From: Heptranchias perlo
Lineage: Eukaryota
Direction of reading: 5' to 3'
Length of the DNA: 64,000 nt
Assembly: GCF_035084215.1 (NCBI RefSeq)
Contig: NC_090340.1
Coordinates: 14,756,001-14,820,000 of the forward strand
Shown here: piece by piece, positions 690 to 57,820 of the stretch
How positions within the stretch are numbered: the stretch's first letter is position 1
Layout of the letters: each line of letters begins with the position of its first letter
Notes under the pieces: generated by a model
The model's database searches: none
What the model saw: only the letters and a program-made list of their open reading frames with translations
Told to the model about the DNA's origin: nothing
Translations under genes and position numbers: made by a program

Positions 690-744
690 ATGTCGGCCAG
701 TATGGTGTTTCTGTCCTTGACGCTCCGGGGGATTATTTGCACAG
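690..744 (+). pseudogene. Copy 1 leader exon MSASMVFLSLTLRGIICT
   Basis: ATG 690, 55 nt, phase-1 GT donor at 745. Same length and phase as the leaders at 27932 and 47007. Confidence 0.85.
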
Positions 745-914
745 GTACCTCTTTATTCACAAGAACAGCTACTTCAATTTATAAAAAGATTCCGAAGTCG
801 TTTCCACATAAATGCAATGATCGTAATTCCTCTATCTAGATTCATTTTCTCTCTCTTCCAACTCCATGTCGTATCTAATGCAATTAACACGGACTTGACT
901 ATATTTTCTGACAG

Positions 915-1109
915 CTGCGGAACACAATTCGTTCAGAGTGACTCAAGCGCCCAAACGGGCAATTGTATCCAAAGGGGGAGACATCACCTTCTACTGCACA
1001 TTCTCCATCTCTCAAGCCCAGTCCCAAGACTCTGGAGTCTATCACTGCGCAGTGATCCGAGAGGGAACAGTTGGAGCAAATGGAACCGGATCATATCTAA
1101 TTGTGCATG
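915..1109 (+). pseudogene. Copy 1 V(J) exon with in-frame internal deletion of about 42 codons
   Basis: Reads FRVTQAP..GDITFYC-16aa-DSGVYHC..NGTGSYLIVH. Only 16 aa lie between the Cys residues versus 58 in copy 2, and the C-strand Trp is missing. Confidence 0.9.
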
Positions 1110-1917
1110 GTAAGTGTGAAACACCGGAGAGCGGGACTGTCGCAAACCTATCAAACATAACAAACGGGAATGTTTTGTGATTGCTTTATTGTACGGTTTG
1201 TGGCAGTATAAACATTTCTGCGAACACATTTCGCGAGAAATTTAAGTTGCAGGTTCGTGTTCTCTATATACAACTGCCAATTAGAGAGTAAAATATTACC
1301 CTTCACATGCAGAGTACAGCAAAATGTATCAATATTAAGCAGTTGGAAAAAAACTCCAAATAAATTTATACACCAGATATCTGATAGCGGAGGTTCAGAA
1401 CAAATTCCAAGCTTATAACTGAGTGAAAATTGTTTCTATTAACACGCTTGCCCCACCATATACACGGCTCTTAGCCCATTTTGGATGCTCTGACTGCCCC
1501 CAGCGCTGTCTCTGGGGGGTTTAACATTCAATAAATTTTTTCTCACATCATGTTTGGCTCGTTAGCGTCACGGATTTGAAAGCCAGCGTGCAACTAACTA
1601 TTGATTAACGGATTCACTCAACAAACTGGAGCTTGGAATTCACAACGTTGTCACCTCACTAACCCCCAATAAATACAATACGCCGGAACTGTATTGCTGC
1701 AACCTCCTGAGGTTCAACCGTATAGTTTATTTCACCAATTGTTATGCTTCAGCTGTGAGATCAGTCCAATACCGAGTAATGCCCTCCTTTTTTCATCGGC
1801 AATGTGGAGATTACTCGAATACTCGTCACTGTCTAACTGAGTAAAGAAAATGGAGGGAATGGGCGCGCCAACTTTCTCCCAGGGTTCATTTGTTTAATTC
1901 TTTGGACTCTGAAAATC

Positions 1918-1990
1918 GCAAACAGATATATTGTAGAATTTGCAAACAGATATATTGTAGAACTTGCAAACAGATATATTGTAGAATTTG
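1918..1990. repeat. Tandem repeat, 3 x 24 bp (GCAAACAGATATATTGTAGAAYTT)
   Basis: Seen directly; lies at the junction where the C1 exon is missing. Confidence 0.9.
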
Positions 1991-2334
1991 TATTGATAGT
2001 CATGAAGATAGTTCACCGGAAACGCATGGGAAATATCAACGAAAACATAAAATTCTTGTTTTAATGTATAATATTATTGAATCCGATATGTTGTAAAATG
2101 GGGTTATATCGTCCGTAGCACAAATATTCTCAGTCAAACCTTATTTGCCTTCAACTTCCTCTATTTGACATATAACAAATATAAACAGGAGTTTATCTTT
2201 TGTATCCCATTATATTTGCTCTCCTGCTTAGTATTAATACTTCTTCGGAATATTTTCCAATTTAAAATGGTATTATTCTTTACCACTGCCGGCTTTCCCT
2301 GCATCAGGACCATTACCTGGCACTGCAGTGAACT

Positions 2335-4003
2335 TTTTTTTAATTCGATCATGGGATGTGGGCGTTGCTGATAAGGACAGCCTTTATTGCCCATCCCTAA
2401 TTACCCTTAAGAAGGCGATGATGAGCCGCCGACTTGAACCGTTGCATTCCATGTGGTGAAGGTTCTCCCACAGTGCTGTTAGGTAGGGAGTTCCAGGATT
2501 TTGACCCAGCGGCGATGAAGGAATGGCGAGATATTTCCCAGTTGGGATGGTGTGTGACTTGGAGGGGAATGTGCAGGTGTTGTGTCCATGTGTCTGCTGC
2601 CCTTGTCCTTCTAGCTGGTAGAGGTCGCGGGTTTTGGAGGTGCTGACCAAGGTGACTTGGCGAGTTGCTGCAGTGCATCCTGTGGATAGTACACACTGCA
2701 GCCACGGTGCGCCGATGGTGAACGGAGCGAATTTTTAGGGTGGTGGATGGGGTGCCAATCAAGCGGGCTGCTTTGTCCAGGATGGTGTCGAGCTTCTTGA
2801 GTGTTGTTGGAGCTGCACTCATCCAGGCAAGTGGAGAGTATTCCATCACACTCCTGACTTGTGCCTTGTAGATGGTGGAAAGACTTTGGGGAGTCAGGAG
2901 GTGAGTCACTCGCCGCAGAATACTCAGCCTCTGACCTGCTCTTGTAGCCACAGTATTTATATGGCTGGTCCAGTTAAATTTCTAGTCAATGGTGACCCCC
3001 AGTATGTTGATGGTGGGGGATTCGGCGATGGAAATGCCATTGAATGTCAAGGGGAGGTGGTGATGGTCATTGCCTGGCACTTGTCTGGCACGAATGTTAT
3101 GTGCCATTATCAGTCCAAGCCTGGATGTTGTCCAGTTCTTGCTGCATGCGGACACGGACTGCTTCATTATCTGAGCGGTTGTGAATGGAACTGAACACGG
3201 TGCAATCATCAGCGAACATCCCCATTTCTGACCTTATGATGGAGGGAAGGTCATTGATGAAGCAGCTGAAGATGGTTGGGGCTAGGACACTGCCCTGAGG
3301 ATCTCCTGTCGCAATGTCCTGGGACTGAGATGATTGTCCTCCAACAACCACTACGATATTCCTTTGTGCTAGGTATGACTCGAGGCACTGGAGAGTTTTC
3401 CCCCTGATTCACATTGACTTCAATTTTACTAGGGCTCCTTGGTGGCACACTCGAGCAAATGCTGCCTTGATGTCAACAGCCGTCACTCTCATTTCACCTC
3501 TGGAATTCAGCTCTTTTTTCCATGTTTGGACCAAGGCCATAATGAGTGTGGAGCCGAGTGATCCTGGCAGATCCCAAAACAAGCATCGGTGAGCAGGTTA
3601 TTGCTGAATAAGTGCCACTTGATAGCACTCTCCATGGCACTTTCCAGCACTTTGCTGGTGATTGAGAGTAGACTGATGGGGCGGTAATTGGCCGGATGTG
3701 ATTTATTCTGCTTTTTGTGGACAGGACACACCTGGGCAATTTTCCACGTTGTCGGGTTCATTCCCCCGTTGTAGCTGTGCTGGAACAGCTTGGCTGGAGG
3801 CGCGGCTGGTTCTGGAGCACAAGACTTCAGCACTACAACCGGGATGTTGTGGGGCCCATAGCCTTTTATGTATCCAGTGTACTCAGCGATTTCTTGATAT
3901 CACGTGCAGTGAATCGAATTGGCAGAAGACTGGCTTCTGTGATGGATATGTCGGGAGGAGGCTGAGATGGTTCATCCTCTCGGCACTTCTGGTTGAAGAT
4001 GAT
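2335..4003 (-). mobile_element. 5'-truncated, degenerate non-LTR retrotransposon, family A (CR1/Jockey group)
   Basis: Frameshifted RT fragments (PQGSVL, MFADD, NYRPISLL) and a poly(A) tail. Close paralog of 48353-52351. Confidence 0.9.
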
Positions 4004-4378
4004 TAGTTGCTTAATTGCTCTCGGACTTCTCTCCTGTTGACAATTCTCAATCCGGACAGCACCCTCCACCTTGCAATAAAAAGTTATAATTTGCAGCAAG
4101 TGATAAATCAACTGTGCTCTGACACACAGTCACTTTCCAACCCGTTACGTTGTGGATGCGTTATGACTTGGAATGAAAACGTGTGTGGCCCCGGCCCGGC
4201 AATGTTTTACACCGTTGTTAATCGCTGCAGGGGCAGGGATTCAAACACTGTCAGCATAATCTGAAATTGAATATTATGTTCGGCTTTGTACTGACTCTGG
4301 AAATTTCTTTGAAATCACTGAATGGAAACTGAGTAACTGTGTCAATCTTTCAATATCATTAAATTTCATTCGTTCCAG

Positions 4379-4422
4379 GTAAACAGGAACGTGTAATGGG
4401 ACCGACCCGCCATGAAGAGCTG
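4379..4422 (+). pseudogene. Copy 1 cytoplasmic exon 1 (GKQERVMGPTRHEEL)
   Basis: 44 nt with AG/GT boundaries, homologous to 32963-33006. Confidence 0.75.
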
Positions 4423-4967: not shown

Positions 4968-5069
4968 GGAGCAGAGGCTGATATCGTGCATTGTGCTGCA
5001 TTAGATTTCAGCAAAGACATGAACATTCCAAGACGTAAAGATGAAGAGGAGCGGACCGTGTACGCTCAG
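4968..5069 (+). pseudogene. Copy 1 cytoplasmic exon 2 (IVHCAAL = degenerate ITIM; TVYAQ = ITSM start)
   Basis: 102 nt with AG/GT boundaries, homologous to 33529-33629. Confidence 0.75.
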
Positions 5070-5277: not shown

Positions 5278-5449
5278 AAATAAAGGGACAACTCGAGACA
5301 AGTTGGCGTAGGCAGCTCTAGCAGTGACTGGCTCAGTGAAAAGGGCGCAATGCAAAAATGACGAAAGAAGCACCGACTATGCCCAGCTACCATCGCAAAA
5401 CCAAAGAAGAATAACAAAGGTTGTTTACTCCGAAGCAAGAACCAAATAG
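5278..5449 (+). pseudogene. Copy 1 terminal cytoplasmic exon (LA*AAL, TDYAQL, VVYSEA)
   Basis: Homologous to 33836-34006. Starts 2 nt shorter than in copy 2 and has TAG at 5309-5311 replacing a motif Tyr. Confidence 0.75.
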
Positions 5450-7378: not shown

Positions 7379-8420
7379 TGTTGACCGGAGGTCACCGGTT
7401 ACGGTTACTGGCTTAGTACAAAGAGGAGAAGTGTCAATTCTCTCTTAACTCTCAATTCGCTTTATTCACGCGGTTAGATCATATACATACAGCTTATACA
7501 TCTGGTTAGATATAGACATGCAGTTTGCACCAGGTTATAAAGTTTAATACCCAAACTAGGATCTAAACGCACACCCATTCGGTTTTCCTGACACACCCTG
7601 AGTGGTCACAGAATATAAAGGATAATACCCGAAAAGGAGAGCTGACGCTGGCCAGGCGTTCCGTTCTATCTCTCTCTCAATGTCGTCTCTACGTCCCTGA
7701 CGTAGGTTCTTCCACTTCCACGATGGTTGGTCTCCGGAGCCTTCGCTCTCTCGCTTTCGAGGTTTCTCTGACACTCCCTGAGTGGTCACAGAATATACGT
7801 CATCTCTACATCCCTGACGTAGGTTCTTTCGCTTCCTCGATGGTTGGTCTCTGGAGTCTTCGCTCTCTCTCTTTCGAGGTTTCTATGACACTCCCTAAGT
7901 GGTCACATAATATACGTTGTCTCTATGTCCCTGACGTAGGTTCTTGCACTTCCGTGATGGTTGGTCTCCGGAGTCTTCGCTCTCTCTCTTTTGAGGTTGC
8001 TCTGACACTCCCTGAGTGGACACAGAATATATGTCGTCTCTATGTCCCTGACGTAGGTACTTCCACTTCCGCGATGGTTGGTCTCCGGAGTCTTCGCTCT
8101 GGCTCCATGCCCCAGATTCTTCATTATTATTCCGAATCTTATCTCTTCAAGCTGTGCTGTCTCTCTCTTTTGTTGGTTTAGGCTTGCTCTCCTCATTGGC
8201 TCTGTCCCAAGGACTTAGGTAGCAATACCTCATTACCCCTTTTCTAAATAAGGACTTGTGTCTTATCACATCTCCTTTGTCTTTCACACAACTTAGTTAA
8301 TTCAAACCGGTTCCAGCCAACACAGGCCAGCGACTGAACTCAGGTTACTTCAGTTCCAAATTTGCTCTTGCCTGTATGTCAGCAGCTGATGTCTCAGGTT
8401 ACTGCAGCCCCTGGCCAACA
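7379..8420 (-). mobile_element. Probable solo LTR (about 1.04 kb)
   Basis: Termini TGTTGACCGG...CTGGCCAACA (TG..CA, 8/10 inverted) and a 4-bp TSD CTGT/CTGC. The CR1 sequence resumes on both sides. AATAAA on the minus strand at about 7461. Confidence 0.75.
7681..8100. repeat. Tandem array, about 3.6 x 117 bp, inside the LTR
   Basis: The TGACGTAGG core recurs at 7698, 7815, 7932 and 8049. Confidence 0.9.
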
Positions 8421-11110: not shown

Positions 11111-13110
11111 CAGAGCGTCAGCAGCAGCAGAGCTTATCAGGAGACCCAGAGCGGCAGATTCAAACAGAGTGCGAGGGCAGCAGCAGCAGAGCCTATCAGG
11201 TGACCCAAAGCGGCAGAGGGGGAAAAACAGAGGGGAAGATTCAAAAAGTGATTTTATGGTGAGCATAGAGTGAGGCATGGTGGAGCCAAGGAATTAGAGC
11301 TAATTGTTTAAGTTATAATTTATCTTAAGTATTACGAGCATAATATCCTATAGCGCAGAGTGTAAGTCAGTGTAAGTATTTATTTTATTGATAAATGTTT
11401 TTTGTGGATATTGTGTTTAGCGGTTAGTGGTTTTTTGCTGATTGCTTGGTGCCTACTAGTGGTTAGTGTTTTAGTGTCAGATAAACGGTAAATTGCCTTA
11501 AAGCTAAACAAACAGTTCAAATAACTGTTAGCTAACATGGTAGGACAGCTGGGGCCAGTCGCATACACATCCTGTGCCATGTGGGAACTCCAGGACACTG
11601 TGTGTGTCCTGGAAAGCCACATGTGTAGGAAGGGCCACCAACTGCTCAGGCTCGAGCTCAGAGTGTTTGCGCTTGAGGGGCGCTGGCATCACTACAGTGT
11701 ATACGGGAATCTGAGAGTTTCATGCATAGCACGTTTCAGGAGGTGGTCACTCCCACAGCTACAGAGAGATCAGGCAGAGACGGAGTGGGTGACGAGCAGA
11801 CAGACTAGGAGGAACAGGCAATCAGTGCAGGAGTTCCCTGGGAGTGTCGTATTCAGTGTTGAATAACAGTGAGGCTGTTGACATCTCGGGGGAGTGCAGT
11901 CAGTAGTAAATCCACGCGCCATGAGAGACTCAGCTGCACAGTGGGGGCAAAGAAATGCAGTCTTACCTCGGTGGTGGGCAAACTATTAGAATCAATACTG
12001 AGAGATAGGATAAACTGTCATTTGGAAAGGCATGGTTTAATCAGGGATAGTCAGCATGGATTTGTTCAGGGAAGGTCATGCCTTACAAATCTGATTGAAT
12101 TCTTTGAGGAAGTGACAAGGAGGATTGATGAGGGTTTTAGTAAGGCCTTTGACAAGGTCCCACATGGCAGACTGGCCAGAAAGGTAAAACCCCATGGGAT
12201 AAAGGGAAATGTGGCGAATTGGATCCAAAATTGGCTCAGTAACAGGAAAAAAAAGTTAAAAGTCGATGGATGTCTTTGTGAATGGAAATCCGTTTCCAGT
12301 GGTGTGCCACAGGGCTCACTGTTGGGTCCCTTGCTGTTCGTGGTATCGATTAATGATTTCGACTTGAACGAAGGGGGCACGATTGGCAAATTTGCAGACG
12401 ACACAAAAATTGGCCGTGTGGTTGAAAGTGAAGAGGATAGCTGTAGACTGCAAGAAGATATCAATAGTATGGTGGAGTGGGCGGAAAAGTGGCAAATGGA
12501 GTTGAACCCAGAGAAGTGTGAGGTCATGCACTTCGGGAGGGCAAACAGTAAAAGGAAATACGCAGTAAACGGGAATATATTGAGAGGGGTGGAGGAAGTG
12601 AGAGGCCTCGAGTGCATGTGCACAGGTCCCCGAAGGTGGCAGTACAGGTAGATAAGGTTGTGAAGAAGGCATACGGAATGCTCTCCATTATTAGCTGAGG
12701 AATAGAATATAAAAGCAAGGATGTAATGATGGAACTGTATAAAACAGTGGTAAGGCCACAACTGGAGTACTGTGCGCAGTTCTGTTCATCACATTCCAGG
12801 AAGGACGTAATTGCTCTGGAGAGAGTGCAGAGAAGATTTACAAGAATGTTGGCAGGGCTTGAAAATTGCAGCTACGAGGAGAGATTGGATTGGCTGGGGT
12901 AGTTTTCCTTGGAGCAGAGGAGGCTGAGGGGTGACTTGATTGAGGTGTACAAAATTATGAGGGGCCCAGCCCAGATAGAATAGACAGGAAGTACCTGTTT
13001 CCCCTAGTGGAGAGTTCAAGAACTAGAGGACGTAGATATAAGGTGGTTGGCGGAAGGATTAGTGGGGATATGAGAAAAACTTTTTTACCCAGAGGGTGGT
13101 CGGTGTATGG
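11110..13110 (+). mobile_element. Internally deleted CR1 LINE (ORF1 zinc-finger start joined to ORF2 RT)
   Basis: SCAMWELQD..MCRK ORF1 motif, followed by QHGF..SCLTNL, SGVPQGS and KFADD. Confidence 0.85.
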
Positions 13111-17690: not shown

Positions 17691-17709
17691 CACACTAATT
17701 CACACTCAC

Positions 17710-27931: not shown

Positions 27932-27986
27932 ATGTTGTCGAGTCTGATGTTTCTGTGCCTGTCTCTCCGGGGAATTAGTTACACAG
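27932..27986 (+). CDS. Copy 2 leader exon MLSSLMFLCLSLRGISYT
   Basis: 55 nt, hydrophobic, phase-1 donor. Confidence 0.85.
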
Positions 27987-30900
27987 GTACCTGTTATTCT
28001 CTATCCCATCTGTCTCAATAAATAAAACATCTGAAGGAGTTATCATATGAATTGAATTAGATTGATATCGTCCATCTATATTCTTCTTTCTCTAATTTAT
28101 TTCCATGTACAAATATTTTCTAAAGTGTCTGGTTCCACATAGAATATAAATAACCAAATGTTTAAAATATTTTATAACAGCTGCTGCACGTATTTCTCAA
28201 ACTCCCGAAAAGATGATTGCATTAAGGGGGACAGACATCACCTTCTACTGTGTAATCCCCCTCTCTCAGGACAACTCAGGGGTAGAAGTGCGTTGGTGGA
28301 AAGGGGGTGAGAACGAATATCTGCAAACAGGCGCCGATAACAGAAAACGATTTGGTGTCAAAAATAAAGGAGCCGGTTTCTTTGAGCTGCGGAACGTGAC
28401 TTTCCAGGACTCTGGAATCTATCACTGCGCAGTGATCCGTCAGGGAAGAGTTAGTGAAAATGGAACGGGCTCAAATCTAATTGTGTGCGGTAAGTGACTG
28501 GGATGATCGGGAACTTCCAAATTTATCAGATGTAACAAGAGGTCATTTTGCGATTGTTTCATTGTAAATTTTTGACGTATAAAAAAGTTATTTTAATACA
28601 TTTACATTCAAACTCAATGTTACTCCGATGTCTCTGTACACAGCTGCTAATTACACGGCATAATATGGCGCTTCATTTGCTGAGTGGTGTGAAATTCCAT
28701 CAATATTAACCAGAGTAAGTAACATATTACTGGATTCATCTCAAAATGTAGTTTCTACATCAGACTTCTGAGGAGGGAAGGTGCGGAACAAATTCCAAAT
28801 ATATTGATGACTGACTGAAAATACTATATATTAATGCACCTCTCCCGCCATTTATACGGCTCTTACCTTGTTTTAGGTGCTCTGTTTGTCCCCGTCACTG
28901 TCGGAGAGGTTTAACGGTCTCTGCTGAAATTAATGCTCAGAAAATGACAGGCTGGTTCGATTGGTGGATTTCAAATCAGATGCAATTAACTCAACAATCG
29001 ATGGATTCAATCAACAAACGGGACCACGAACCAAAATTTCGCCGCCTCTTTCGCCTCCAATAAATAAAATATTCCGCAGAGACTGAGCGGCTGAAACTTT
29101 CTGAGATTGAATGGAATGTAATTTCCTTCAGCCATTCCCATGCTCGGGCAGTGTGCACTGCCCGATAATCATTTGGTCCCTCCTTTTATTCTCGATAATG
29201 TACAGACTTTCCGTTTCTCTCTTGGGGAGACAGTCAGACAAGGCCAGAGTTACGAACAAACGGGGAATGACTGAGAATGGCATCAATCGCTCATATCTTA
29301 CGTTTAATATCTCCCCAGTAACCTGATTTTCCCCATTGTCTGTTCGACAGCTGCCCCAACTCCACTGAAGATTGTCTCCAGGACACCCGAGTGCAAATCG
29401 TCTGCCTCTCTGACTCTTGTGTGTGAAACGGCTGAGTTTTACCCCGAGGACTTCACCCTCACTTGGTATAAAAATGGCGTCAAAACCACAACTGGGATAA
29501 ATATCACTAAACGGCAGAACACCGAGGGTTTGTATGAAGTTTCCAGTTCTTTGGAAGAGACGCAGCTTAAGCGGAATGGATCTGTTTACATCTGTTTGGT
29601 AACTCATGTCACCCTCCAGGAACCCGCCATTGTAACTTACACTGTAAGCAATTCCAACCCAGGTAAGAGGCCAACAGGCCAAGAACTGAGGTCAGCTACT
29701 GTTAAATACTGAAAGGGTATTTCATAGAGTTTGTTCATATTGATAATCATAAGATAATTTGAATTAAATTCCCGGGAAATCGGACAGAAAATACATGTTT
29801 CAATGTAATATATTATTTACCCGAACCTGTTGTAAAAACGGAAGTAATATTGTCGCTCTCCACCCAGAAACTGCCAGTGAAACCTCGACAGCTTCCAAAT
29901 TGTTAAAAAAAAAGTATAAGCAGGGATTTTATCTTTTGTATCCGATTATTTTATGTCTCTTGCGTATTACTAAACATTTAAATTTGTCCGCTTGTTAAAG
30001 TGTTTTTATTCTATCCCATTATATTCTTTCCTTACATGAGCTGCGGGACCAGGAGCTGCAGTTCGGTGTCTACCACCGAGCCTCTTCTGGTGCGGCTCCT
30101 GATTCCGAGCTCGGTTGGGCGATATTGTGAATGGGTTAGAAATCGACCTTGTGGATAGGCCGTAACCTGACCCCTCCATGATACAGAAGTTTGGAGCGGG
30201 ATACCATTTCATTCCTTTCATTCAGGCCCTGCCCCAGATCTGTCTGTACTACAACCGGGTGCAAAGCATCGTTTTATTAACAACCATTTTTCTGTAATTA
30301 ACAAATACTCGTGTACTTGTTTCCTTTCCTATTCAGTGACAGTCTTATTTCGGTAAATACACTGCAGGTAATTGAATTGGCATTTAAACTAATTGAAGCA
30401 ACCAGCCTTTTTTCTCAGGCAATGGCGAGTCACATGTCACTGACTGGCCCTGATTTCAGCAAACAGCTTAAGACCAGAAGAAAAGTCAATTCGAAGAACA
30501 AGTCATTCGGTCCATCGTAACTTATTCCTCTAGAATTCTAACTCTCCCAAATCAATCTTCAGAACACCCTAAACTGATTCCCTCCGTCGCAGAATATTCC
30601 GGGCATGTGTCGCCATTTGTGACAAGGAGCTCCTTTTGATATCAGTTCTAAAAAGATAAATTAAGATTATTTTCAAATTCCCACGTTCTCGTGCTATAAT
30701 GCGGAGTTACTGTAAATATGAACGGTAGTTCAACCAACAAATTATCCCAACGTCTCTATTTAGATAACGCCCGCCACAAATTAGAACTCTTTGTTCCTTT
30801 TAATCTTGCAGATCGTGACTGTAAATATCGTTACCTCTGGGGTGCTGGATGGGCGGTGGGTGGATTGGCGTTTCTCGTGCTCATGATCATCATTGGGACA

Positions 30901-33839
30901 AGATGCAATTTGAAGAATAAAGGTAAGTGTAACCTTAATCGTCTTATTTTCAGAAAAATCTTCAGAGGGATAGTAACAGCATCCTGGGCGGCACAGCAGG
31001 AGAAAAGTGCGAGTGTTATTTAAAGTGCAGGTGATATTATCTGATACCAAAGGAATAGAGACTACCGCTTGCTGCAAATGGCACTAAATTCAGCATCTTA
31101 CAATGCAAGAATTCTCACAGAATCATATTATAAAGGATCTGATTATCTGGATATTAATAATGGATATTAATATCCACTTTGTGGCAGATAAGTGAAATCG
31201 GATCGATTGTTTCATCAATTTGCGGGTCCCTGACTATTTTGGGTAAAGTGGTGTCAGTGTCCAGTCGGTGTCGATGTGCACGACTGCTGATGGCTTCAGG
31301 GACTCGGATTTACAATACAATACAATACGGAAAATGTGATATCACAAAATAACTGCGACGAGGAAGACCATTCGGTCGATCTTAATTGGTCCGCCCAGAT
31401 GAAAATGTTCCCCCAATGTAGAATCCAGCTGTTTGTTAAAGGATCCTGGGACTTTTGCCTCCTTTGCCGTACCTGAAAGTTTATTCCACATGTTGATCGT
31501 TGAGAAGGAGAAATTCCTGACATCATTCTTAAAATTATCTTTTACTACTTTTGTCCCCCAGGACAGCACCCACAGTTAAATATTTAGTACTATATGGGTA
31601 CGGTAGTGTAGTGCTTATGGTACTGAACTTTTAATCCTGAGGCCTGGATTTATAATCCAGAGAAGGTGATTCAAACAGCGCCATGGCATTTTGAGAACTT
31701 GAAACCAGTTTTTAAAATTTGGAAATAAAAAGCTGGTTTCCGTGAAAAAGCAAGTGACCGTGAAGCTGCCGGATTGTCATAAAAAGCCAAGTAATTCATT
31801 AATGTCCTTTGGGGATGGAAACCTGCCGTCCTTACTCGGTCTGGCCTATATGAGACTCCAGTCCCACACCAATGTGGTTAACTCTTAACTGTTCTCTGAA
31901 GTGGTCTAGTAAGCTAATCAGTTGTCTCTAACTCAAGACAACTAAAGATGGAGAATAAATGCTGCCCTTGTTGGCCACACCACATCCTGAGAATGAATAA
32001 AGCAAAAATGTGGGTTAACTTTATGCGCTCAACATTCTTATATATTTCCATAAGATCACTGCTCAGACGCCTAATTTCCAGGCTAAAAGATTAAGTTTAT
32101 TCGGGGTTTCTTCATAACTCAGTTCACTGACACTGGGAAACCAGCCTGGTGGCTCTTCTCTGCACCGCCGCTAGCGCTAACGCTTGTTCATCAGTGACCA
32201 AAACTATTCTCAGTATTCAATGGACCATGTGACCAGAGCACTGATGCCAGCTTTTTCTTTCCAAATTTCAAATACTGGTTTCAAGATCTCAAAATGCCAT
32301 GGCGGTGTTTGAATCACCTTCTCTGGATCATAAATCCAGGCCTCTCGCTTAAAAGTTCAGTAACATAAGCACGACACTACCGTACCCTTATATTGCTATA
32401 TATTTAACTGTGGGGACTGAACTAGGGGACACTGGTAAAAAGTAGCAAATGATAATGTTAAGAATGATGTCAGGAATTTCTTCTTCACAACGATCAACAT
32501 GTGGAATAGATTCCCAATAACAGCAAAGGAGACAAATGTCCTAGGAACCTTTAACAAACAACTGGATTCTACTTCGGGGAGCATTTTCATCAGGGTGGAT
32601 GAATTAAATTCTACTGTTTTGCCTATGTAGTTCAACGTCGTATTGGCTTTGTCCACTGCTGCTCTGCTTGGATGGACATGTGTTTAGCGTCCAGTCTACT
32701 AAGACTCCTAAATCTCTTTTAGTTCCATCCTTAGCTATTTCAATGCAATCCATGGAATACATGGATAGTTTAATTTTCCTTCCCATCAGTCGTAATCTAC
32801 TCTTCTCTGCATTGAATTTCATCTGCCATTGCTCTTCCCACCAATATATCTAAATTCATGTTAAGCTTAACATTGTTTCTAAAAATACTTTTGAAAGCAT
32901 AAACATGGAAACTGAATAAACATTTTAATCATTGAATGTAATCAAATATCATTCATTCCCAGGTAAACAGGAAAGTGTAACAACACCGCACCGCAATGAA
33001 GAGCTGGTAGGTTCATAACATTCATCCAGGAAGAGGGTTCGAATTTAAATAAATATTATTATGATGGAGATATTTCATCAAAAGTATTTGTCCCTCTTTG
33101 ATGCGTCATTCAAATCGTGTTTTGAGAATTATTTGGCACTTGTTGCGATGCTGGTGTAACTGGTTAAACAAAGGATAAAAACAAGGTATGATGGTAGCTT
33201 TATTCAACATATACATAGGTAATAATTACTGGTAAATCCATCTAATCGTTGCTTTTGGAATCTGATATTACACGTCTAAGATTCTAAAATTATCTCTTGT
33301 TTAATCATATCTGTAACACTGCATGGTAGTGAAAATTGACAGGTTGGAATGTGAGTTACAGTGGACACACGATTTACCGGCCTTAATATTCGTACATTTT
33401 AAAATATATTCACTGTGGTTTTATTTGAAGTCCCGATCATTCTGTGCAATATTCCATCAGCAGTCTGTAAACTGGCGAAGGCAATGAACTAGCCACATAA
33501 CAAGACAATTTCCTTCTGGCCCATGCAGGCAGCAGAGAATGAGATAGCGCCTTATGCTGCATCAGATATGAGCAAAGCCAAGAGAACCCCAGGACGTAAA
33601 CGTGAAGAGCGAGGGCAGTACACGCTGAGGTAGGGCCGAGAAGCAGATAAGGGAAAATAGATCACCACCGTGGCACTAACATTCATGTAATAGCGGAGTA
33701 TTTTGGATTGTGCTGACTTTAACCGTGTATTGTATCTAAAGCTATTTGTGAGTTATTCTGATGACTACTTTGAGCAGCAGTCCACAAACTGGTAAAAAGA
33801 CCAATCAGCAATACTTCCAAACATTGGCTTTTCAGGTAA
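27932..33839 (+). CDS. V(J)-C1-TM IgSF receptor copy 2 (SIRP-like / NKp30-like / VJC1-type), about 311 aa with a truncated tail
   Basis: join(27932-27986,28181-28489,29351-29662,30812-30922,32963-33006,33529-33629,33836-33839). All junctions are GT/AG and phase-consistent through exon 5. Exon 6 is 101 nt, a frameshift that ends the protein at QYTLR*. Confidence 0.85.
28181..28489 (+). CDS. Copy 2 V-set exon with germline J-like G strand
   Basis: ISQTP, TFYC, VRWWK, LRNVTFQDSGIYHC, NGTGSNLIV; 309 nt, phase 1-1. Confidence 0.93.
29351..29662 (+). CDS. Copy 2 C1-set exon
   Basis: TLVCETAEFYPEDFTLTWYKNG..NTEGLYEVSSSL..YICLVTHVTL; 312 nt, phase 1-1. Confidence 0.93.
30812..30922 (+). CDS. Copy 2 stalk and transmembrane exon (no charged TM residue)
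   Basis: DRDCKYRY-LWGAGWAVGGLAFLVLMIIIG-TRCNLKNK; 111 nt. Confidence 0.88.
31596..32008 (+). mobile_element. tRNA-derived SINE with a family A LINE-type 3' tail
   Basis: tRNA-like head, body homologous to 44405-44890, and tail AATAAATGC..CACATCC..GAATAAA. Confidence 0.75.
32245..32600 (-). repeat. Inverted duplicate of about 31392-31740
   Basis: Reverse-complement match spanning the LINE/SINE junction. Confidence 0.8.
32963..33006 (+). CDS. Copy 2 cytoplasmic exon 1 (GKQESVTTPHRNEEL)
   Basis: 44 nt, phase 1-0, homologous to 4379-4422. Confidence 0.75.
33529..33629 (+). CDS. Copy 2 cytoplasmic exon 2 (APYAAS), with a 1-nt deletion
   Basis: 101 nt versus 102 nt in copy 1. Confidence 0.72.
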
Positions 33840-34006
33840 AACAAGGAAGAGCCCGTGACAAGCTGACGAACGCGACTCCAGAATTTTCTGGCTCCGGGAA
33901 AGCGAGGAAATCTAAAAATAACCGGCAAAGCACAGAATATGCCGAGCTTCAGGGGAAAAAACAAAGAGTAACAGAGGTCGTCTTCACAGAAGCAAGAACC
34001 ACATAG
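33836..34006 (+). CDS. Copy 2 terminal exon, open in the ancestral frame (TEYAEL); translated only through alternative splicing
   Basis: TTTTCAG acceptor; VKQGR..STEYAEL..VVFTEARTT* with no internal stop. Confidence 0.6.
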   Translation, partial: VKQGRARDKLTNATPEFSGSGKARKSKNNRQSTEYAELQGKKQRVTEVVFTEARTT

Positions 34007-44890: not shown

Positions 44891-45339
44891 AGGATGAGCG
44901 ATCTGCCCTGCACAGTATCCCCGCGACACAAATCGTTCCTCTGGACCTGACTTGGCTCGGGCCAAGAAAGATAAGTGCGGGTCGGCGTAGCCGACCTGAA
45001 CTAGAGATATTGACTTCACATCGGTAGCTGCAATGTAAATGCACTCTAACATTCAGTTCAATTAAATACAACAAACCTTATCTTCACTTGTTATTTATGG
45101 CTTTAGATAAGGGTGAAGTTACGGTGCAGATAAACCCAAACCTTTTGAACATTTAGCTTTATCTGAAAGACCAATTGATCCATCCTAGCTCAGCCATCTA
45201 AAAACCGACATTTCCCCTATTACAGAATTTAATTCCCCCTTAAATGATTTCAGAGTGATGCCTCAACTTCAGTACCCCATGTCCACTTCCATTTGAGATC
45301 AGACTTTGTGTAAAGAAGAGCTTTTCCTTATCTGTTCTC

Positions 45340-47006: not shown

Positions 47007-47061
47007 ATGTCTGTGAGGGCTCTGCTTCAGAGCATACAGCTCATGGGAATTATTTTCATAG
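47007..47061 (+). CDS. Copy 3 leader exon MSVRALLQSIQLMGIIFI
   Basis: 55 nt, phase-1 donor, followed by an 85-nt intron. Confidence 0.82.
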
Positions 47062-47146: not shown

Positions 47147-47464
47147 TTGCTGCCGACACTCTGTTTAAAGTGACCCAGGCCCTTGAAAACACCAATTCCA
47201 TCGCTGATACAAATATTGCCTTCAATTGCACATTTCCCAGTGTTCCAGACGATTCAAGTGTAAATATATATTGGTGGAAACTCGCCGAAAAGGAATTGAT
47301 TCAATCAGGCTCAGACAGCAGGAAACAATTTAGTAATGAGAATGGAAGAGCCTCCTTCCATCTCCTGAATGTCAGTGTCCTGGACTCTGGAGTCTATTAC
47401 TGCTTCGTGACATTTCTAGGGGACAGGGCTGAAAATGGAAGTGGATCAAAGCTTGTCGTCAGTG
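47147..47464 (+). CDS. Copy 3 V-set exon with J-like end
   Basis: FKVTQ, AFNC, IYWWK, LLNVSVLDSGVYYC, NGSGSKLVVS; 318 nt, intact. Confidence 0.93.
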
Positions 47465-48065: not shown

Positions 48066-48352
48066 AAAGAACTTGCACTTATTTAGCGCCTTTGAAGACC
48101 TCCATAAAGCGCTTTACAACCAATGAAGTATTTTTGAAATGTAGTCACTGTTGTCATGTAGGAAAACGTGGCGGCCAATTTGCACACAGCAAACTTCTAC
48201 AAACAGCAATGAGATAATGACCAGGCAATTAATGATGGTACTTGAGGGATAAATATTGGCCAGGACAACAGAAGAACTTCTCTGCACGTCTTCGACTAGT
48301 GCTGTGTGATCCTTTATGTCCACCACAGAGAGTAGGGTTACATTTTAACATC
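48066..48352 (-). mobile_element. DeuSINE (SacSINE/AmnSINE-like), split by the family A LINE; a remnant resumes at about 52352
   Basis: Deu-domain-like sequence (TCCTGGCCAATATTTATCCCTCAA.., CTACATTTCAAAAATACTTCATTGG..AAAGCGCTT) on the minus strand. Recognised from memory of the family. Confidence 0.7.
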
Positions 48353-51300
48353 TTTTTTTTTATTCGTTCACGGGATGTGGGCGTCGCTGGCAAGGCCGGC
48401 ATTTATTGCCCATCCCTAATTGCCCTCGAGAAGGTGGTGGTGAGCCGCCTTCTTGAACCGCTGCAGTCCGTGTGGTGACGGTTCTCCCACAGTGCTGTTA
48501 GGAAGGGAGTTCCAGGATTTTGACCCAGCGACAATGAAGGAACGGCGATATATTTCCAAGTCGGGATGGTGTGTGACTTGGAGGGGAACGTGCAGGTGGT
48601 GTTGTTCCCATGCGCCTGCTGCCCTTGTCCTTCTAGGTGGTAGAGGTCGCGGGTTTGGGAGGTGCTGTCGAAGAAGCCTTGGCGAGTTGCTGCAGTGCAT
48701 CCTGTGGATGGTGCACACTGCAGCCAAAGTGCGCTGGTGGTGAAGGGAGTGAATGTTTAGGGTGGTGGATGGGGTGCCAATCAAACGGGCTGCTTTATCT
48801 TGGATGGTGTCGAGTTTCTTGAGTGTTGTTGGAGCTGCACTCATCCAGGCAAGTGGAGAGTATTCCATCACACTCCTGACTTGTGCCTTGTAGATGGTGG
48901 AAAGGCTTTGGGGAGTCAGGAGGTGAGTCACTCGCCACAGAATACCCAGCCTCTGACCTGCTCTCGTAGCCACAGTATTTATATGGCTGGTCCAGTTAAG
49001 TTTCTGGTCAATGGTGACCCCCAGGATGTTGATGGTGGGGGATTCGGCGATGGTAATGCTGTTGAATCTCAAGGGGAGGTGGTTAGACTCTCTCTTGTTG
49101 GAGATGGTCATTGCCTGGCACTTATCTGGCGCGAATGTTACTTGCCACTTATCAGCCCAAGCCTGGATGTTGTCCAGGTCTTGCTGCATGCAGGCTCGGA
49201 CTGCTTCATTATCTGAGGGGTTGCGAATGGAACTGAACACTGTGCAGTCATCAGCGAACATCCCCATTTCTGACCTTATGATGGAGGGAAGGTCATTGAT
49301 GAAGCAGCTGAAGATGGTTGGGCCTAGGACACTGCCCTGAGGAACTCCTGCAGCAATGCCCTGGGGCTGAGATGATTGGCCTCCAACAACCACTACCATC
49401 TTCCTTTGTGCTAGGTATGACTCCAGCCACTGGAGAGTTTTCCCCCTGATTCCCATTGACTTCAATTTTACTAGGGCTCCTTGGTGCCACACTCGGTCAA
49501 ATGCTGCCTTGATGTCAAGGGCAGTCACTCTCACCTCACCTCTGGAATTCAGCTCTTTTGTCCATGTTTGGACCAAGGCTGTAATGAGGTCTGGAGCCGA
49601 GTGGTCCTGGCGGAACCCAAACTGAGCATCGGTGAGTAGGTTATTGGTGAGTAAGTGCCGCTTGATAGCACTGTCGACGACACCTTCCATCACTTTGCTG
49701 ATGATTGAGAGTAGACTGATGGGGCGGTAATTGGCCGGATTGGATTTGTCCTGCTTTTTGTGGACAGGACATACCTGGGCAATTTTCCACATTGTCGGGT
49801 GGATGCCAGTGTTGTAGCTGTACTGGAACAGCTTGGCTAGAGGCGCAGCTAGTTCTGGAGCACAAGTCTTCAGCACTACAGCTGGGATGTTGTCAGGGCC
49901 CATAGCCTTTGCTGTATCCAGTGCACTCAGCCGTTTCTTGATATCACGGGGAGTGAATCGAATTGGCCGAAGACTGGCTTCCGTGATGGTGGGGATATCG
50001 GGAGGAGGCTGAGATGGATTATCCACTCGGCACTTCTGGCTGAAGATGGTTGCAAAGAGGATGAGACCGGGAAATTAATGGTGGGAAACATGGAGATGGC
50101 AAAAATGCTGAACAAATATTTTGTTTCAGTCTTTACAGTAGAGGACACTAAGAATATCCCAACACTGGACAAACAGGGGACTCTCGGGGGGGAGGAGCTA
50201 AATACGATTAAAATCACTCAGGAGATGGTACTCAGTAAAATAATGGGACTCAAGGCGGATAAATCCCCTGGACCTGATGGCTTCCATCCTAGGGTCTTGA
50301 GGGAAGTGGCAGTAGGGATTGTGGATGCTTTGGTGATCGTTTTCCAAAATTCCCTGGACTCAGGAGAGGTCCCGGCAGATTGGAAAACTGCTAATGTAAC
50401 ACCGTTATTTAAAAAGGGTAGTAGGCAGAAGGCTGGAAATTATAGGCCAGTTAGCTTAACATCTGTGGTGGGTAAAATTTTGGAGTCTATTATTAAGGAG
50501 ACAGTAACGGAACATTTAGATAAGCATAATTTAATAGGACAAATTCAGCATGGCTTTATGAAGGGGAAGTCATGTCTGACAAATTTGCTTGAGTTCTTCG
50601 AGGATATAACGTATAGGGTGGATAAAGGGGAACCAGTGGACATAGTGTATTTAGACTTCCAGAAGGCATTCGACAAGGTGCCACATAAAAGATTATTACT
50701 TAAGATAAAAAATCACGGGATTGGGGGTAATATTCTGGCATGGGTGGAGGATTGGTTATCGAACAGGAAGCAGAGAGTTGGGATAAATGGTTCATTTTCG
50801 GACTGGCAACCAGTAACCAGTGGTGTTCCACAGGGGTCGGTGCTGGGTCCCCAACTCTTTACAATCTATATTAACGATTTGGAGGAGGGGACCGAGTGCA
50901 ACATATCAAAATTTGCAGATGATACAAAGATGGGAGGGAAAGTAGAGAGTGAGGAGGACATAAAAAACCTGCAAGGGGATATAGACAGGCTGGGTGAGTG
51001 GGCGGAGATTTGGCAGATGCAATATAATATTGGAAAATGTGAGGTTATGCACTTTGGCAGGAAAAATCAGAGAGCAAGTTATTTTCTTAATGGCGAGAGA
51101 CTGGAAAGTACTGCAGTACAAAGGGATCTGGGGGTCCTAGTGCAAGAAAATCAAAAAGTTGGTATGCAGGTGCAGCAGGTGATCAAGAAAGCCAACGGAA
51201 TGTTGGCTTTTATTGCTAGGGGGATAGAATATAAAAACAAGGAGGTATTGCTGCAGTTATATAAGGTATTGGTGAGACCGCACCTGGAATACTGCATACA

Positions 51301-52351
51301 GTTTTGGTCTCCATACTTAAGAAAAGACATACTTGCTCTCGAGGCAGTACAAAGAAGGTTCACTCGGTTAATCCCGGGGATGAGGGGGCGGACATATGAG
51401 GAGAGGTTGAGTAGATTGGGACTCTACTCATTGGAGTTCAGAAGAATGAGAGGCGATCTTATTGAAACATATAAGATTGTGAAGGGTCTTGATCGGGTGG
51501 ATGCAGTAAGGATGTTCCCAAAGATGGGTGAAACTAGAACTAGGGGGCATAATCTTAGAATAAGGGGCTGCTCTTTCAAAACTGAGATGAGGAGAAACTT
51601 CTTCACTCAGAGGGTGGTAGGTCTGTGGAATTTGCTGCCCCAGGAAGCTGTGGAAGCTACATCATTAGATAAATTTAAAACAGAAATAGACAGTTTCCTA
51701 GAAGTAAAGGGAATTAGGGGTTATGGGGAGCGGGCAGGAAATTGGACATGAAGCTGAGTTCGGATCGGTCAATGCCCTGTGGGTGGCGGAGAGGGCCCAG
51801 GGGCTATGTGGCCGGGTCCTGCTCCGACTTCTTGTGTTCTTTAGATTTGTGGTTGGGATCAGATCAGCTATGATCTTATTGAATGGCGGAGCAGGCTCGA
51901 GGGGCCGATTGGCCTACTCCTGCTCCAATTTCTTATGTTCTTATGTTCTTAAACGCTTCAGCCTTGTCTTTTGCACTCACGTGCTGGACTCCGCCATCAT
52001 TGAGAATGGGGATGTTTGCAGAGCCTCCTCCTCCCGTTAGTTGTTTAGTTGTCCACCACCATTCACGACTGGATGTGGCAGGACTGCAGAGCTTTGATCT
52101 GATCCGTTGGTTGTGGAATCGCTTAGCTCTGTCTATAGCATGTTGCTTCCGCTGTTTAGCATGCATGTAGTCCTGAGTTGTAGCTTCACCAGGTTGGCAC
52201 CTCATTTTTAGGTACGCCTGGTGCTGCTCCTGGCATGCTCTTCTACACTCCTCATTGAACCAGGGTTGATCCCCTGGCTTGTTGGTAATGGTAGAGTGAG
52301 GAATATGCCGGGTCATGAGGTTACAGATTGTGCTGGAATACAATTCTGCTG
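48353..52351 (-). mobile_element. Young 5'-truncated family A LINE with an uninterrupted RT ORF, split by a CR1 insertion
   Basis: 536-aa RT ORF at 48416-50026 plus a fragment at 51951-52343 that rejoin in frame (KDKAEAF/ATIFSQKCRV); poly(A) tail. Confidence 0.93.
50057..51950 (+). mobile_element. Young 5'-truncated CR1 LINE with an intact 557-aa RT/C-terminal ORF
   Basis: ORF 50078-51751 has no stops; (TTCTTATG)n tail; AAA duplicated at both junctions. Confidence 0.95.
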
Positions 52352-53067: not shown

Positions 53068-53378
53068 CTCCCCCAACTCCCCTGAGGATTGTCTCCAAAG
53101 CATCTGAAAGTAATGTATCTGTTTCTTTCACTCTCGTGTGTGAAATGGCTGCATTTTACCCGGAGGGACTGACTACCACTTGGTATAAAAATGATAGAAG
53201 CATTGAGATTGGAATACGTACAACTAAACAGCTCACTAGAGCCGGGATGTATGAAGCTTCCAGCTATCTTGAAGAGACACAGCCTGTTCAGGGAGGGACT
53301 GTCTATGTCTGTCTGGTTTCTCACGTGACCCTCCCGATTCCACCATGGCGATTTACTTGGTTCCCAATTCTAATGCAG
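53068..53378 (+). CDS. Copy 3 C1-set exon, with a 1-nt deletion near 53340
   Basis: TLVCEMAAFYPEGLTTTWYKN..YVCLVSHVTL. The ancestral G strand MAIYLVPNSNA is in the shifted frame. Confidence 0.9.
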
Positions 53379-54724: not shown

Positions 54725-54844
54725 GCATTGACAGTACTTCGCCCTCGCCTTATTTACGGATCCTTGGATTGGCGGGGTTTGCATTGGCGTTTCTGGTGCT
54801 GGTGATCACCATTGGAATGTTGTTCAGATTAAGTATCTGTAAAG
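54725..54844 (+). CDS. Copy 3 transmembrane exon (ILGLAGFALAFLVLVITIGMLF)
   Basis: 120 nt, phase 1-1, homologous to 30812-30922, intact in the ancestral frame. Confidence 0.85.
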
Positions 54845-55527: not shown

Positions 55528-56694
55528 GTAAGTTTGCGTGCTTCTGCAGCTAACTTACATCAGACTGGGACATCGCGATACCTGTCAGCATGAAGTACTC
55601 CCAAATCAAGGTTCGCGCAGAATTCGTACCGAAATCCGTTGTCCAGGCACTAAGTGTACTCCGTCTGCCCAGTTCCTATTTTATTAGCCCTGCGTGTCAG
55701 GGCCAATAACATAGTCTGGGGACACCCCCAGTGTGGGCTCGTTCCGTCACAGGTCTAGTGCCGGCTGTAAAGAGAGGACATTTGAGCGTAATCCCTTGGC
55801 CGCAGACCTCTGAGAGCAGCAGCCAGCAGATTTCAATCCCGAAGAGTGGCTTGGAAACTTGGAAAAAGTATCCAACTTACCTTTTAGGGTTCTGATTTGG
55901 TTTGATTCAAGACCTTTTCAGGCTGCCTATTCTGAGGAGAGGAGGGGGTTCCGGCGCAAGCCGAACGTCATCTTCATGCGGCACCTTAGATACCGAGAAT
56001 TCTTCGTATAGGAAAAAAGGTGGAAGATCTGGCGCTTCCTCTACCCTGAAGGAGGCTGCGCCTACTGCAGCCCACAGATCCCAGCGCAACATAACGGGGA
56101 TGAGACCCTGAAAAATTGGTCTCTATCCCCATTTTCCTGACATTTGCGCCCAAGGACAAGTCATTTCCCAAAGACAAAGATCCGGAAAATCGACCTTAAA
56201 CGAAAATCATACCTTCGGGACGTGCTATAGATGTTTTACCTTTAAAACTCGATATAATTTCTCCTGAGATTGGCTGTTTAGATTCAATTCGGCACGGGCC
56301 AGCACCAGCAACAAATTTCTGCCCTCCTCCCACCCTCCACCGCCGCAATCCCCACCCCCGCCAAGGCGAGCTCCATACTGCAATTGGAAACCAAGCTTGG
56401 GGGTCTCCAAAGAAATTTCAAAAGGTTGCCAACGAAAATATTGCTGGGGTCAACGGTCCACTAGTGAGTGTCCACAAAGGCTGCTGCACCAAATTAACAG
56501 GTTTACGTGTTTCTTATCCATCATGTAAATCTTGCTTGAGGCATATAGAATGATTAGATTCATACTCCACGCTTGGGGCACCCAGAGTGGTGTGAGGCGA
56601 TGTCTTGGAGCAGGGTATGGAATTTCAGAATTTGTGCGTTAAATTGAAACGTTTGTGTTGCTATGCAAACAAAACCAGTTCATATCGACGAAAA

Positions 56695-56810
56695 TTGGCA
56701 ATATTTCCGAAATTACAACTGCAACTACACTTCAAAAGTACTTATTGTCTGTGAAGCGCTGTGGGCCGTCCTGGTGTCCTCAAAGGGGCTAAATAAATGT
56801 AAGTTCTTCC
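56695..56810 (+). mobile_element. DeuSINE 3' fragment
   Basis: ACTACACTTCAAAAGTACTT..GTGAAGCGCT..ATAAATGTAAG. Confidence 0.6.
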
Positions 56811-56869
56811 TTCTATGTTCAGCGTTCGGAAATAAATTTAAGTTCCCAGGGCCTCACTAATATTTATAT

Positions 56870-57310
56870 CACTCGAATGATAGCTGGGATGGGATGTTTT
56901 AGTTTTGAGGAGCGACTGGAGAAACTTTTTTCCCGCTAAAACTGAAGAATAACAGAAGAAGATCTGATAGAAGTGTTCAAATTATGAATGATCTCACGAA
57001 AGTAAATAAGGAATATCTATTTCCTGTGACCCATGAGTCGGCAACTCGAGGACATAAATTTAAGATCATCACCAAAAGGACACAGGTACGAGAATTGTTA
57101 TTTTGCCAGAGAGTTGGGACATGAAATCCCTACCAGAACCGCTGGTGGAATCAGAATCCATAAAAACATTTAAAAGAGGAGCGGATAAATGTTTCAAAAA
57201 GACAAAAAAACAAAAGCATATGGCGAAAGGGCATGGGACTAAGACTAAGTGGATACCTCTTTCGGACAGGCGGCACAGGCAAGAGTATGTAAAATTCTGT
57301 GATTCTAACA
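56870..57310 (+). mobile_element. Decayed CR1 3' end
   Basis: EERLEKL, TRGHKFK and FKRGADK remnants. Confidence 0.65.
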
Positions 57311-57640
57311 CGATAACACACACATGAATTGTGAAACAGTGGATGTAATGAACAATAAATACTGTATATTGTAGACACTGTCTTCTGGATAATTGAACTA
57401 TATTAACAATCATTATGGATTTGGGATGATCTATAGCTTTACTTCCAAAGTACTTATTATAGGAGAATGGATGTTTTGTAAATAAAACGGCTGTTGCCAG
57501 AGGTAACTGGCCAACTCAATAATATAAATATAATAATCTAAAGACTATTCAAATATCATGGAGACGGTACTCTATTTCATCAAGCATTACGTAGATTGAT
57601 GAAATTAACGAGATAACGTTACAATGCATTGCTTTTACAG

Positions 57641-57820
57641 AGCTTGCAAACAGCAGTTGATAACCCGATGACTTACGCTGCCGTCGTTCTGCCTGGTTCT
57701 CAGAAAAATGGAAAACCGAAAAGGAAGGAAAGGAGCACAGAGTGCTTAGAGATGAAGACGATACACTAGAGGAGAGAAGCACCGATCGTCCATACAGAAC
57801 CAAGATTCGAATTATACTAA
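57641..57820 (+). pseudogene. Copy 3 terminal cytoplasmic exon (MTYAAV, STECLEM, stop at 57767, IVHTEP)
   Basis: TTTTACAG acceptor. Motif spacing matches 33836-34006 and 5278-5449. Confidence 0.7.

Follow-up and report, generated by a model that had tools for sequence, protein, structure and literature searches.

The 64,000-nt stretch of Heptranchias perlo contig NC_090340.1 analyzed here (positions 14,756,001 to 14,820,000 of the forward strand; hereafter the window) carries, in tandem on its plus strand, three paralogous copies of a receptor gene in which an immunoglobulin (Ig) V domain, already joined in the germline to a J-like strand (VJ), is meant to be followed by a C1-set domain, a transmembrane (TM) segment and a cytoplasmic tail with tyrosine motifs. 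The window probably captures, in the course of degeneration, part of a large and clustered family of paired receptors of cartilaginous fishes, the three copies being old paralogs of which copy 1 is dead, copy 3 inactivated and copy 2 truncated in its tail.

Architecture and probable decay of the three copies

The exons were read directly from the sequence and with Pfam, tblastn, blastn and hidden Markov models (HMMs) of the family, the searches being run by single exon, and junction frames were obtained by phase arithmetic (Table 1). Each copy opens with a leader exon running from ATG to G|GT, followed by a single V(J) exon of phase 1-1 with an open frame after the AG and a GT donor at its end. 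Within each V exon the stretch from the YxC motif through the J-like NGxGS to the donor is unbroken (J-like peptides at 1079-1105, 28459-28485 and 47434-47460), and no heptamer or nonamer of a recombination signal sequence (RSS) is present in or near these exons, from 50 nt upstream to 150 nt downstream. Copies 2 and 3 each possess one C1 exon with an FYP motif, relatives likewise having one, and the Pfam matches to the V-set and C1-set models lie above the curated cut-offs. A six-frame scan of both strands of the whole window with the family HMMs recovered no further V, C1 or TM exons. The anatomy that a first-pass annotation had read from the letters, namely three paralogs sharing a 55-nt leader and a single RSS-free V exon with a GxG strand, copies 2 and 3 also having a TM exon and an FYP-bearing C1 exon, is real. 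Its description of the TM segment as uncharged holds for the cores of both copies; at the outer edge of the segment, however, copy 3 carries an Arg (YLRILG). At this site of copy 3 (54749-54757, YLRILGLAG..) the Callorhinchus family member P0021 has Leu; Heterodontus P0023, the nearest V relative of copy 3, is a form with Arg in the TM segment and a short tail.

In the gene plan of the family the 55-nt leader would be followed by single exons for the germline-joined V(J) and the C1-set domain, then by a stalk/TM exon, one exon of 44 nt and at least one exon of about 100 nt, each of the latter supplying one xxYAxLxL-type and one TxYAQ/TEYAxL-type tyrosine motif. RNA data bearing on this plan consist of three small sequencing runs whose RNA nature was guessed and which hold next to no sequence words of the locus. 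A single 259-nt contig of one of them (run X3) is about 92% like copy 2 and comes from a paralog. Placed on copy 2, it joins 30922 to 32963 (GT..AG), 33007 to 33531, and, across 17 inserted letters, 33609 to 33832, and thereby leads from the TM exon (phase 1 end) through the 44-nt exon and a 102-nt exon A into the last exon (phase 0), reading in frame as ..EEERAAYAQ|VKQG.. Such a spliced contig cannot derive from genomic DNA of the locus, and splicing of the gene plan's 3' half therefore takes place in this organism's RNA.

Copy 1 is a pseudogene, a dead relic, because its V exon has suffered a deletion of 114 nt, its C1 and TM exons are absent, and its last exon has both a frameshift and a TAG codon. 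The V deletion, which the first-pass annotation had left unmentioned, is internal and in frame, and has removed strands C to D, the invariant Trp included. Between 1109 and 4379 the family HMMs detected neither a C1 nor a TM exon, and a colinear alignment of copies 1 and 2 skips both; a repeat is inserted at 2333-4004, where the C1 exon would be expected. A V domain shortened like that of copy 1 is also seen in the Heptranchias perlo protein "isoform X3" (P0162; FYCIFPISQDHSW-LLSATFQDSG). In copy 1 the short form is fixed in the genome, and short-V forms may be recurrent in this receptor family.

In copy 2 the leader, V, C1, TM and 44-nt exons are intact and in phase. AlphaFold2 models of its V and C1 exons are confident, at predicted local distance difference test (pLDDT) values of 91.7 and 86.8, respectively. 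Its exon A, however, is 101 nt long versus 102 nt in copy 1 and in the expressed paralog, so that it ends in phase 2 and a stop codon falls in the next exon. The tail given by default splicing has APYAAS and GQYTLR before this stop (ending ..APYAASDMSKAKRTPGRKREERGQYTLR), and contains no immunoreceptor tyrosine-based inhibitory or switch motif (ITIM or ITSM). The last exon is open in its own phase-0 frame, with Asn and Phe at two of its three tyrosine-motif positions and STEYAEL retained. Skipping of exon A, which would bring the phase-0 end of the 44-nt exon onto the phase-0 last exon, would give an in-frame tail with STEYAEL only. The 1-nt deletion would truncate the tail ahead of the canonical motifs, so that copy 2 may be either a recent pseudogene, or a tail-less receptor resembling SIRP-gamma, or the source of an exon-A-skipping isoform that keeps only STEYAEL.

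Copy 3 has a C1 exon that is one base short, and its TM exon is therefore out of frame. The C1 HMM matches this exon at positions 1-92 only, the G strand (..MAIYLVPNSNAG; copy 2 counterpart ..PAIVTYTVSNSNPG) being readable in the +2 frame only; this single-base deletion in the G strand would have inactivated the gene. The tail exon of copy 3 has one Tyr (MTYAAV), a Cys in place of Tyr in STECLEM and an early stop.

The five-tyrosine inhibitory tail that had been reconstructed for these genes is intact in none of the three copies. Such a tail is that of the closest relative, Heptranchias P0162 (HYTAL, IVYAQI, LTYATL, TEYAQL, AAYSEA), whose five tyrosine positions are represented by C, Y, stop, Y and Y in copy 1 and by Y, Y (in shifted codons), N, Y and F in copy 2, where the frameshift precedes the last exon. 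The motifs [S/I/V/L]xYxx[I/V/L] and TxYxx[V/I] are absent from the translated tails of all three copies (copy 2 with default splicing; copy 3 frameshifted upstream; copy 1 dead). The tyrosine losses in the untranslated parts (Y to N and Y to F in copy 2, Y to C in copies 1 and 3) fit relaxed constraint. The proposal of ITIM/ITSM signalling thus keeps its force for intact family members, which carry ITIM/ITSM-like tails, but not for the copies in the window, one being a pseudogene and the other two having a 1-nt frameshift each.

Several observations weigh against reading the window as a degenerating stretch of a paired-receptor family. Both 1-nt deletions are known from the assembly alone and could be assembly errors. 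In copies 2 and 3 every canonical residue of the V and C1 exons is retained, which would mean either that inactivation was recent or that the ectodomains are still in use. The tail model of copy 3 is incomplete: an HMM scan, blastn with the exons of copies 1 and 2 and an enumeration of splice sites and phases in the window yielded nothing convincing for exon A, the 44-nt exon or other linkers from TM to tail (phase 1 to phase 0). The three small runs contain no contig that matches copy 2 exons at 99% identity or more, which proves neither silence nor expression, and we infer the SHP recruitment and adaptor pairing proposed below for the family from motifs only. A rival view, in line with the first-pass annotation, would make copies 2 and 3 intact inhibitory receptors with a multi-tyrosine tail, and both single-base deletions errors of the assembly. 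Each lesion is indeed just one base, copy 2 has a last exon whose own frame is still open, and no other defects are seen in the V, C1 and TM exons. Yet even in a restored frame Asn and Phe would still occupy two of copy 2's five tyrosine positions, and its APYAAS is not an ITIM; copy 3 has the Cys in STECLEM and no exon A or 44-nt exon was found for it in the window; and a modern assembly is unlikely to contain, within 30 kb, two independent errors that both hit critical sites. We regard intactness of copies 2 and 3 as decidedly improbable. Read as a degenerating stretch, the window would present the birth-and-death side of the family, with three old sublineages adjacent and each at a different stage of decay, and it is not the best place for studying an intact receptor.

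Table 1. Exons of the three receptor gene copies, in positions of the window
Feature	Position	Strand	Length (nt)	Remarks
Copy 1 leader exon	690..744	+	55	MSASMVFLSLTLRGIICT + 1 nt; direct reading; 68.5% nucleotide identity to copy 2 leader region
Copy 1 V(J) exon	915..1109	+	195	phase 1-1; V HMM matched only at positions 1-32 and 71-102
Copy 1 small cytoplasmic exon	4379..4422	+	44	GKQERVMGPTRHEEL; aligned to the copy 2 exon seen spliced in RNA
Copy 1 cytoplasmic exon A	4968..5069	+	102	first Tyr to Cys (IVHCAAL), TVYAQ retained; tblastn and HMM
Copy 1 last exon	5278..5449	+		2-nt deletion at start; TAG for Tyr codon (KLA*AAL)
Copy 2 leader exon	27932..27986	+	55	
Copy 2 V(J) exon	28181..28489	+	309	phase 1-1; ends NGTGSNLIVC-G at donor; Pfam V-set 1.4e-9
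Copy 2 C1-set exon	29351..29662	+	312	phase 1-1; FYP; Pfam C1-set 2.5e-13
Copy 2 stalk and TM exon	30812..30922	+	111	DRDCKYRYLWGAGWAVGGLAFLVLMIIIGTRCNLKNK; donor at 30922 used in paralog RNA contig
Copy 2 small cytoplasmic exon	32963..33006	+	44	phase 1 to phase 0; paralog joints 30922>32963 and 33007>33531
Copy 2 cytoplasmic exon A	33529..33629	+	101	not 102; base missing near 33609/10; ends in phase 2
Copy 2 last exon	33836..34006	+		after exon A reads AG|G TAA, stop at 33837-33839
Copy 3 leader exon	47007..47061	+	55	
Copy 3 V(J) exon	47147..47464	+	318	phase 1-1; NGSGSKLVVS-G
Copy 3 C1-set exon	53068..53378	+	311	FYP; base missing near 53336; Pfam C1-set 8e-11
Copy 3 stalk and TM exon	54725..54844	+	120	out of frame after C1 frameshift; TGA after 26 codons
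Copy 3 single tail exon	57641..57769	+		..MTYAAVVL..STECLEM..TIH*

The wider family and the age of the copies

A full HMMER scan with the copy 2 V exon recovered 83 representative proteins below an E value of 1e-10, most of them with a single V domain and 220-420 residues long, the best (Heterodontus XP_067904999) being 78% identical. Their hosts are the chimaera Callorhinchus, the sharks Heterodontus, Heptranchias, Scyliorhinus, Mustelus, Chiloscyllium, Stegostoma, Hemiscyllium and Carcharodon, and the batoids Pristis, Mobula, Hypanus and Hemitrygon. Cluster look-ups showed that in each species all members lie on one large contig, often with consecutive accession numbers. The automatic names given to them are mixed (SIRP-alpha-like, SIRP-beta-1-like, tapasin-related-like, Ig lambda-1-like, NCR3LG1-like, NCR3-like, BTNL10 and major histocompatibility complex (MHC) class II beta-like), and therefore no tetrapod family is a clear best match. 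The expanded cartilaginous-fish family of germline-joined VJ-C1-TM genes that the first-pass annotation had supposed is thus borne out by these 83 representatives in sharks, batoids and a chimaera. Its further suspicion, that the family is undescribed or only automatically annotated, agrees with the inconsistent RefSeq names, and a literature search, with subscription papers outside its coverage, found no description of a VJ-C1-TM family with tyrosine-motif tails.

When 25 members are aligned, the V, C1 and TM regions are evident, and many of the members add a tail of repeated units such as VxYAxLDL..EERTVYAQTK or LTYAALDL..NTEYAELQ. The alternation of xTYAxLxL with TEYAxxQ presumably recalls the tail of human SIRP-alpha. 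Survey of the TM segments and tails revealed three types, namely members with long tails containing 4-7 Tyr, members with an Arg or Lys in the TM segment and tails of 8-35 residues, and members that lack a TM segment. To judge from these features, the family follows the pattern of paired inhibitory/activating receptors. Intact long-tailed members would act like SIRP-alpha, with the V domain binding a ligand and a Src-family kinase phosphorylating the tail tyrosines, whereupon recruitment of SHP-1/SHP-2 would give inhibition. Members with the basic TM residue and a short tail would instead signal through an adaptor with an ITAM (immunoreceptor tyrosine-based activation motif).

The age of the three copies was addressed with a V-domain tree of 47 rows, a quick search without an outgroup to which copy 1 contributes only about 60 columns, and with a likewise quick and unrooted C1 tree; branch support is given as Shimodaira-Hasegawa-like approximate likelihood ratio (SH-aLRT) values. 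In the V tree copy 2 groups with Heterodontus, Scyliorhinus and Chiloscyllium in a four-row clade of sharks only (SH-aLRT 96), and copies 1 and 3 fall in clades that contain both sharks and rays, of seven rows (96) and ten rows (97), respectively. In the C1 tree copy 3 stands among the same relatives as in the V tree (81), and copy 2 beside a Heptranchias sequence (83). Copies 1 and 2 can be aligned through their introns at 66-69% identity, copies 2 and 3 in the V and C1 exons only. The trees point to the three copies being old sublineages that predate the split of sharks and rays and have been kept in tandem. Accordingly, the epithet "fast-diverging" that had been applied to the family does not fit these copies, each of which sits in a separate V-tree clade supported at 96 or more, copies 1 and 3 together with both sharks and rays. 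The exons of copies 2 and 3 remain alignable but their introns do not, a contrast that speaks for prolonged purifying selection and a recent inactivation after it.

Relationship to SIRP, antigen receptors, UrIg and NKp30

When a profile of the family was compared with all sequences in PDB, the best scores over a single V+C1 stretch were 68.5 bits for SIRP-alpha (2wng), 66.4 for Ig lambda and 65.0 for Ig kappa, with UrIg2 at 53.9. Given these nearly equal values, the V-C1 module appears about equidistant from SIRP and Ig light chains, and the likeness of the module to an Ig light chain, noted already in the first-pass annotation, is upheld, as it scores as near to these chains as to SIRP-alpha.

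The SIRP family (SIRP-alpha, -beta and -gamma; PDB 2wng, 4i2x) nevertheless offers the closest parallel among non-rearranging receptors, giving the best profile score of these over a single stretch. Like the shark genes, SIRPs have a germline-joined V domain whose G strand is J-like, with a C1-set domain after it, in a type I membrane protein, and some members have long tails of alternating tyrosine motifs, others a basic TM residue with a short tail. The SIRP-defining N-terminal V-set domain with a J-like G strand in one RSS-free exon is present in the window, whereas the tail with several ITIMs, or the basic TM residue with a short tail, is found in the relatives from other species, no intact motif set being translated in the window. 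In a feature search of the ESM Atlas, Callorhinchus P0021 lay nearest to two SIRP-alpha clusters (0.97), followed by V-C1 and Ig kappa-like clusters. The shark family differs from SIRP in having one C1 domain instead of two, in comprising dozens of genes in at least three old sublineages, and in a sequence similarity to SIRP that is no greater than that to Ig light chains. Genes flanking the cluster are absent from the window. The family is not filed here as SIRP because it has one C1 domain and not the defining two; by analogy it very likely works like SIRP.

It might still be held that these genes are the SIRP family of cartilaginous fishes, true orthologs or co-orthologs of tetrapod SIRPA/SIRPB and hence of an already known kind. 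Such a view could draw on the many members automatically named SIRP-alpha-like or SIRP-beta-1-like, on the Atlas position of P0021, on the top rank of 2wng in the profile search and on the occurrence of paired inhibitory and basic-TM forms in the family. Set against it are the single C1 exon, the nearly equal scores of Ig lambda and Ig kappa, and the fact that members of the same family are also named after tapasin-related, Ig lambda, NCR3LG1, BTNL10 and MHC class II beta proteins. Moreover, word-indexed searches with P0021 or with the 25-sequence profile returned chondrichthyan family members only and no tetrapod SIRP, and the tail alone had no usable match in the ESM Atlas. The C1 exon used by itself as a query yielded two Callorhinchus fragments. 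Orthology with tetrapod SIRPs is thus a possible, though somewhat unlikely, interpretation.

The rearranging chains, i.e. Ig light chains and T-cell receptor (TCR) chains built from V, J and C1, share with the family the two-domain V-C1 plan, phase 1 exons and profile scores about equal to that of SIRP-alpha. Foldseek searches are in keeping with this, the V model of copy 2 having VNAR, CD79b and TCR V domains as top matches, and the C1 model MHC class II beta2, UrIg2 and Ig CL. Unlike these chains, the genes here have neither an RSS nor a separate J segment, and possess their own TM segment and signalling tail. Identity with a rearranging receptor is ruled out by the unbroken YxC..GxG stretch in one exon and the lack of an RSS.

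UrIg and UrIg2 (PMC12227049; PDB 9dmx) are likewise cartilaginous-fish genes in which a single-exon VJ is followed by C1-type domains, and UrIg2 is among the best PDB matches for both the C1 exon and the family profile. In these genes, however, the VJ exon is followed by at least three C1-type domains, against the one C1 exon seen here, and the V+C1 stretch of UrIg2 scores below those of SIRP-alpha and the Ig light chains. UrIg and UrIg2 have been described as retained in elasmobranchs only (PMC12227049), while the present multigene family is also found in the chimaera Callorhinchus, and no tyrosine-motif tail has been reported for UrIg2 (PMC12227049). The single C1 domain together with the lower score rules out a UrIg-like identity. 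Copy 2 has two extra Cys residues, one at the end of the J-like strand (28486-28488, LIVC) and one in the stalk (30817-30819, DRDCKY), the junctional one being found also in one sublineage of the family (P0003, P0005, P0009, P0021 and P0043). By analogy with the disulfide-linked UrIg2 dimer, both could form interchain disulfides.

NKp30 (NCR3) resembles the family in its non-rearranging VJ exon with an NGTG-type G strand, and the J-like NGTGS motif of the shark genes is one that we take to recall it. NKp30 has an Arg in its TM segment and is not known to carry an ITIM tail. A placement of the family with NKp30 or its B7-type ligands, and not with SIRP or antigen receptors, would accord with the names of some members, NCR3-like (the V-only isoform P0025 of Pristis being an example) or NCR3LG1-like. 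NKp30 has no C domain, however, whereas the genes here have a bona fide C1 exon, and structures of NKp30 or B7 proteins are not among the best Foldseek or profile matches of the V domain, CD276 appearing for the C1 domain only. This placement is very improbable. Copy 1, unlike copies 2 and 3, has no C1 exon, but its TM exon is missing as well and the copy is broken; the C1-set exon in copies 2 and 3 rules out an NKp30-like identity.

Genes that combine a single-exon VJ with C1 domains are actively looked for as remnants of the antigen receptor that preceded RAG, and two recent papers on non-rearranging shark VJ genes call the hunt for intact VJ genes of one exon a matter of great interest (PMC12227049, PMC10751288). 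These two papers discuss UrIg, UrIg2, NCR3 and PRARP (non-rearranging VJ-C1 genes of the chicken) and do not mention a VJ-C1-TM family with tyrosine-motif tails. A VJ-C1 multigene family of sharks, rays and chimaeras in which inhibitory and activating forms are paired would contribute a further data set here, and would push SIRP-type paired receptors back to the base of the jawed vertebrates. A bolder and, in our estimate, unlikely reading is that the family is an undescribed ancient lineage of all three groups of cartilaginous fishes, the one that, of the non-rearranging relatives anchored in the membrane, comes closest to the shape of a single TCR or Ig light chain, and from which the tetrapod SIRPs were derived by duplication of the C1 domain. 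If this were so, it would furnish a second candidate, beside UrIg/UrIg2, for the type of gene that the RAG transposon invaded.

Repeats around the genes

The intron of copy 2 between its TM and 44-nt exons contains an inverted repeat (31382-31744 and 32239-32607, 85% identical) that encloses a short repeat at 31730-31929. Contigs with a summed depth of 21,000-31,000 match the latter in all three sequencing runs, and it appears to be an abundantly represented element resembling a short interspersed nuclear element (SINE), unrelated to the receptor.

An interspersed repeat of up to 1.7 kb occurs in three copies that are 88-96% identical (2333-4004, 48352-50051 and 60833-61736) and, inverted, at 44752-44892; it also lies within copy 3, in the intron that separates V from C1. 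The long plus-strand frame of the repeat (e.g. 2739-3191) had no Pfam match, while tblastn suggests a reverse-transcriptase-like coding region on the minus strand. Most of the intergenic space is filled by reverse-transcriptase fragments of the long interspersed nuclear element (LINE) type, among them 11863-12648 (Pfam RVT_1, E value 6e-26), 40669-42277, 50060-51703 and many others. Finally, comparison of the window with itself by blastn revealed a tandem duplication at 7682-8100 with a period of about 117 nt and copies about 90% identical.

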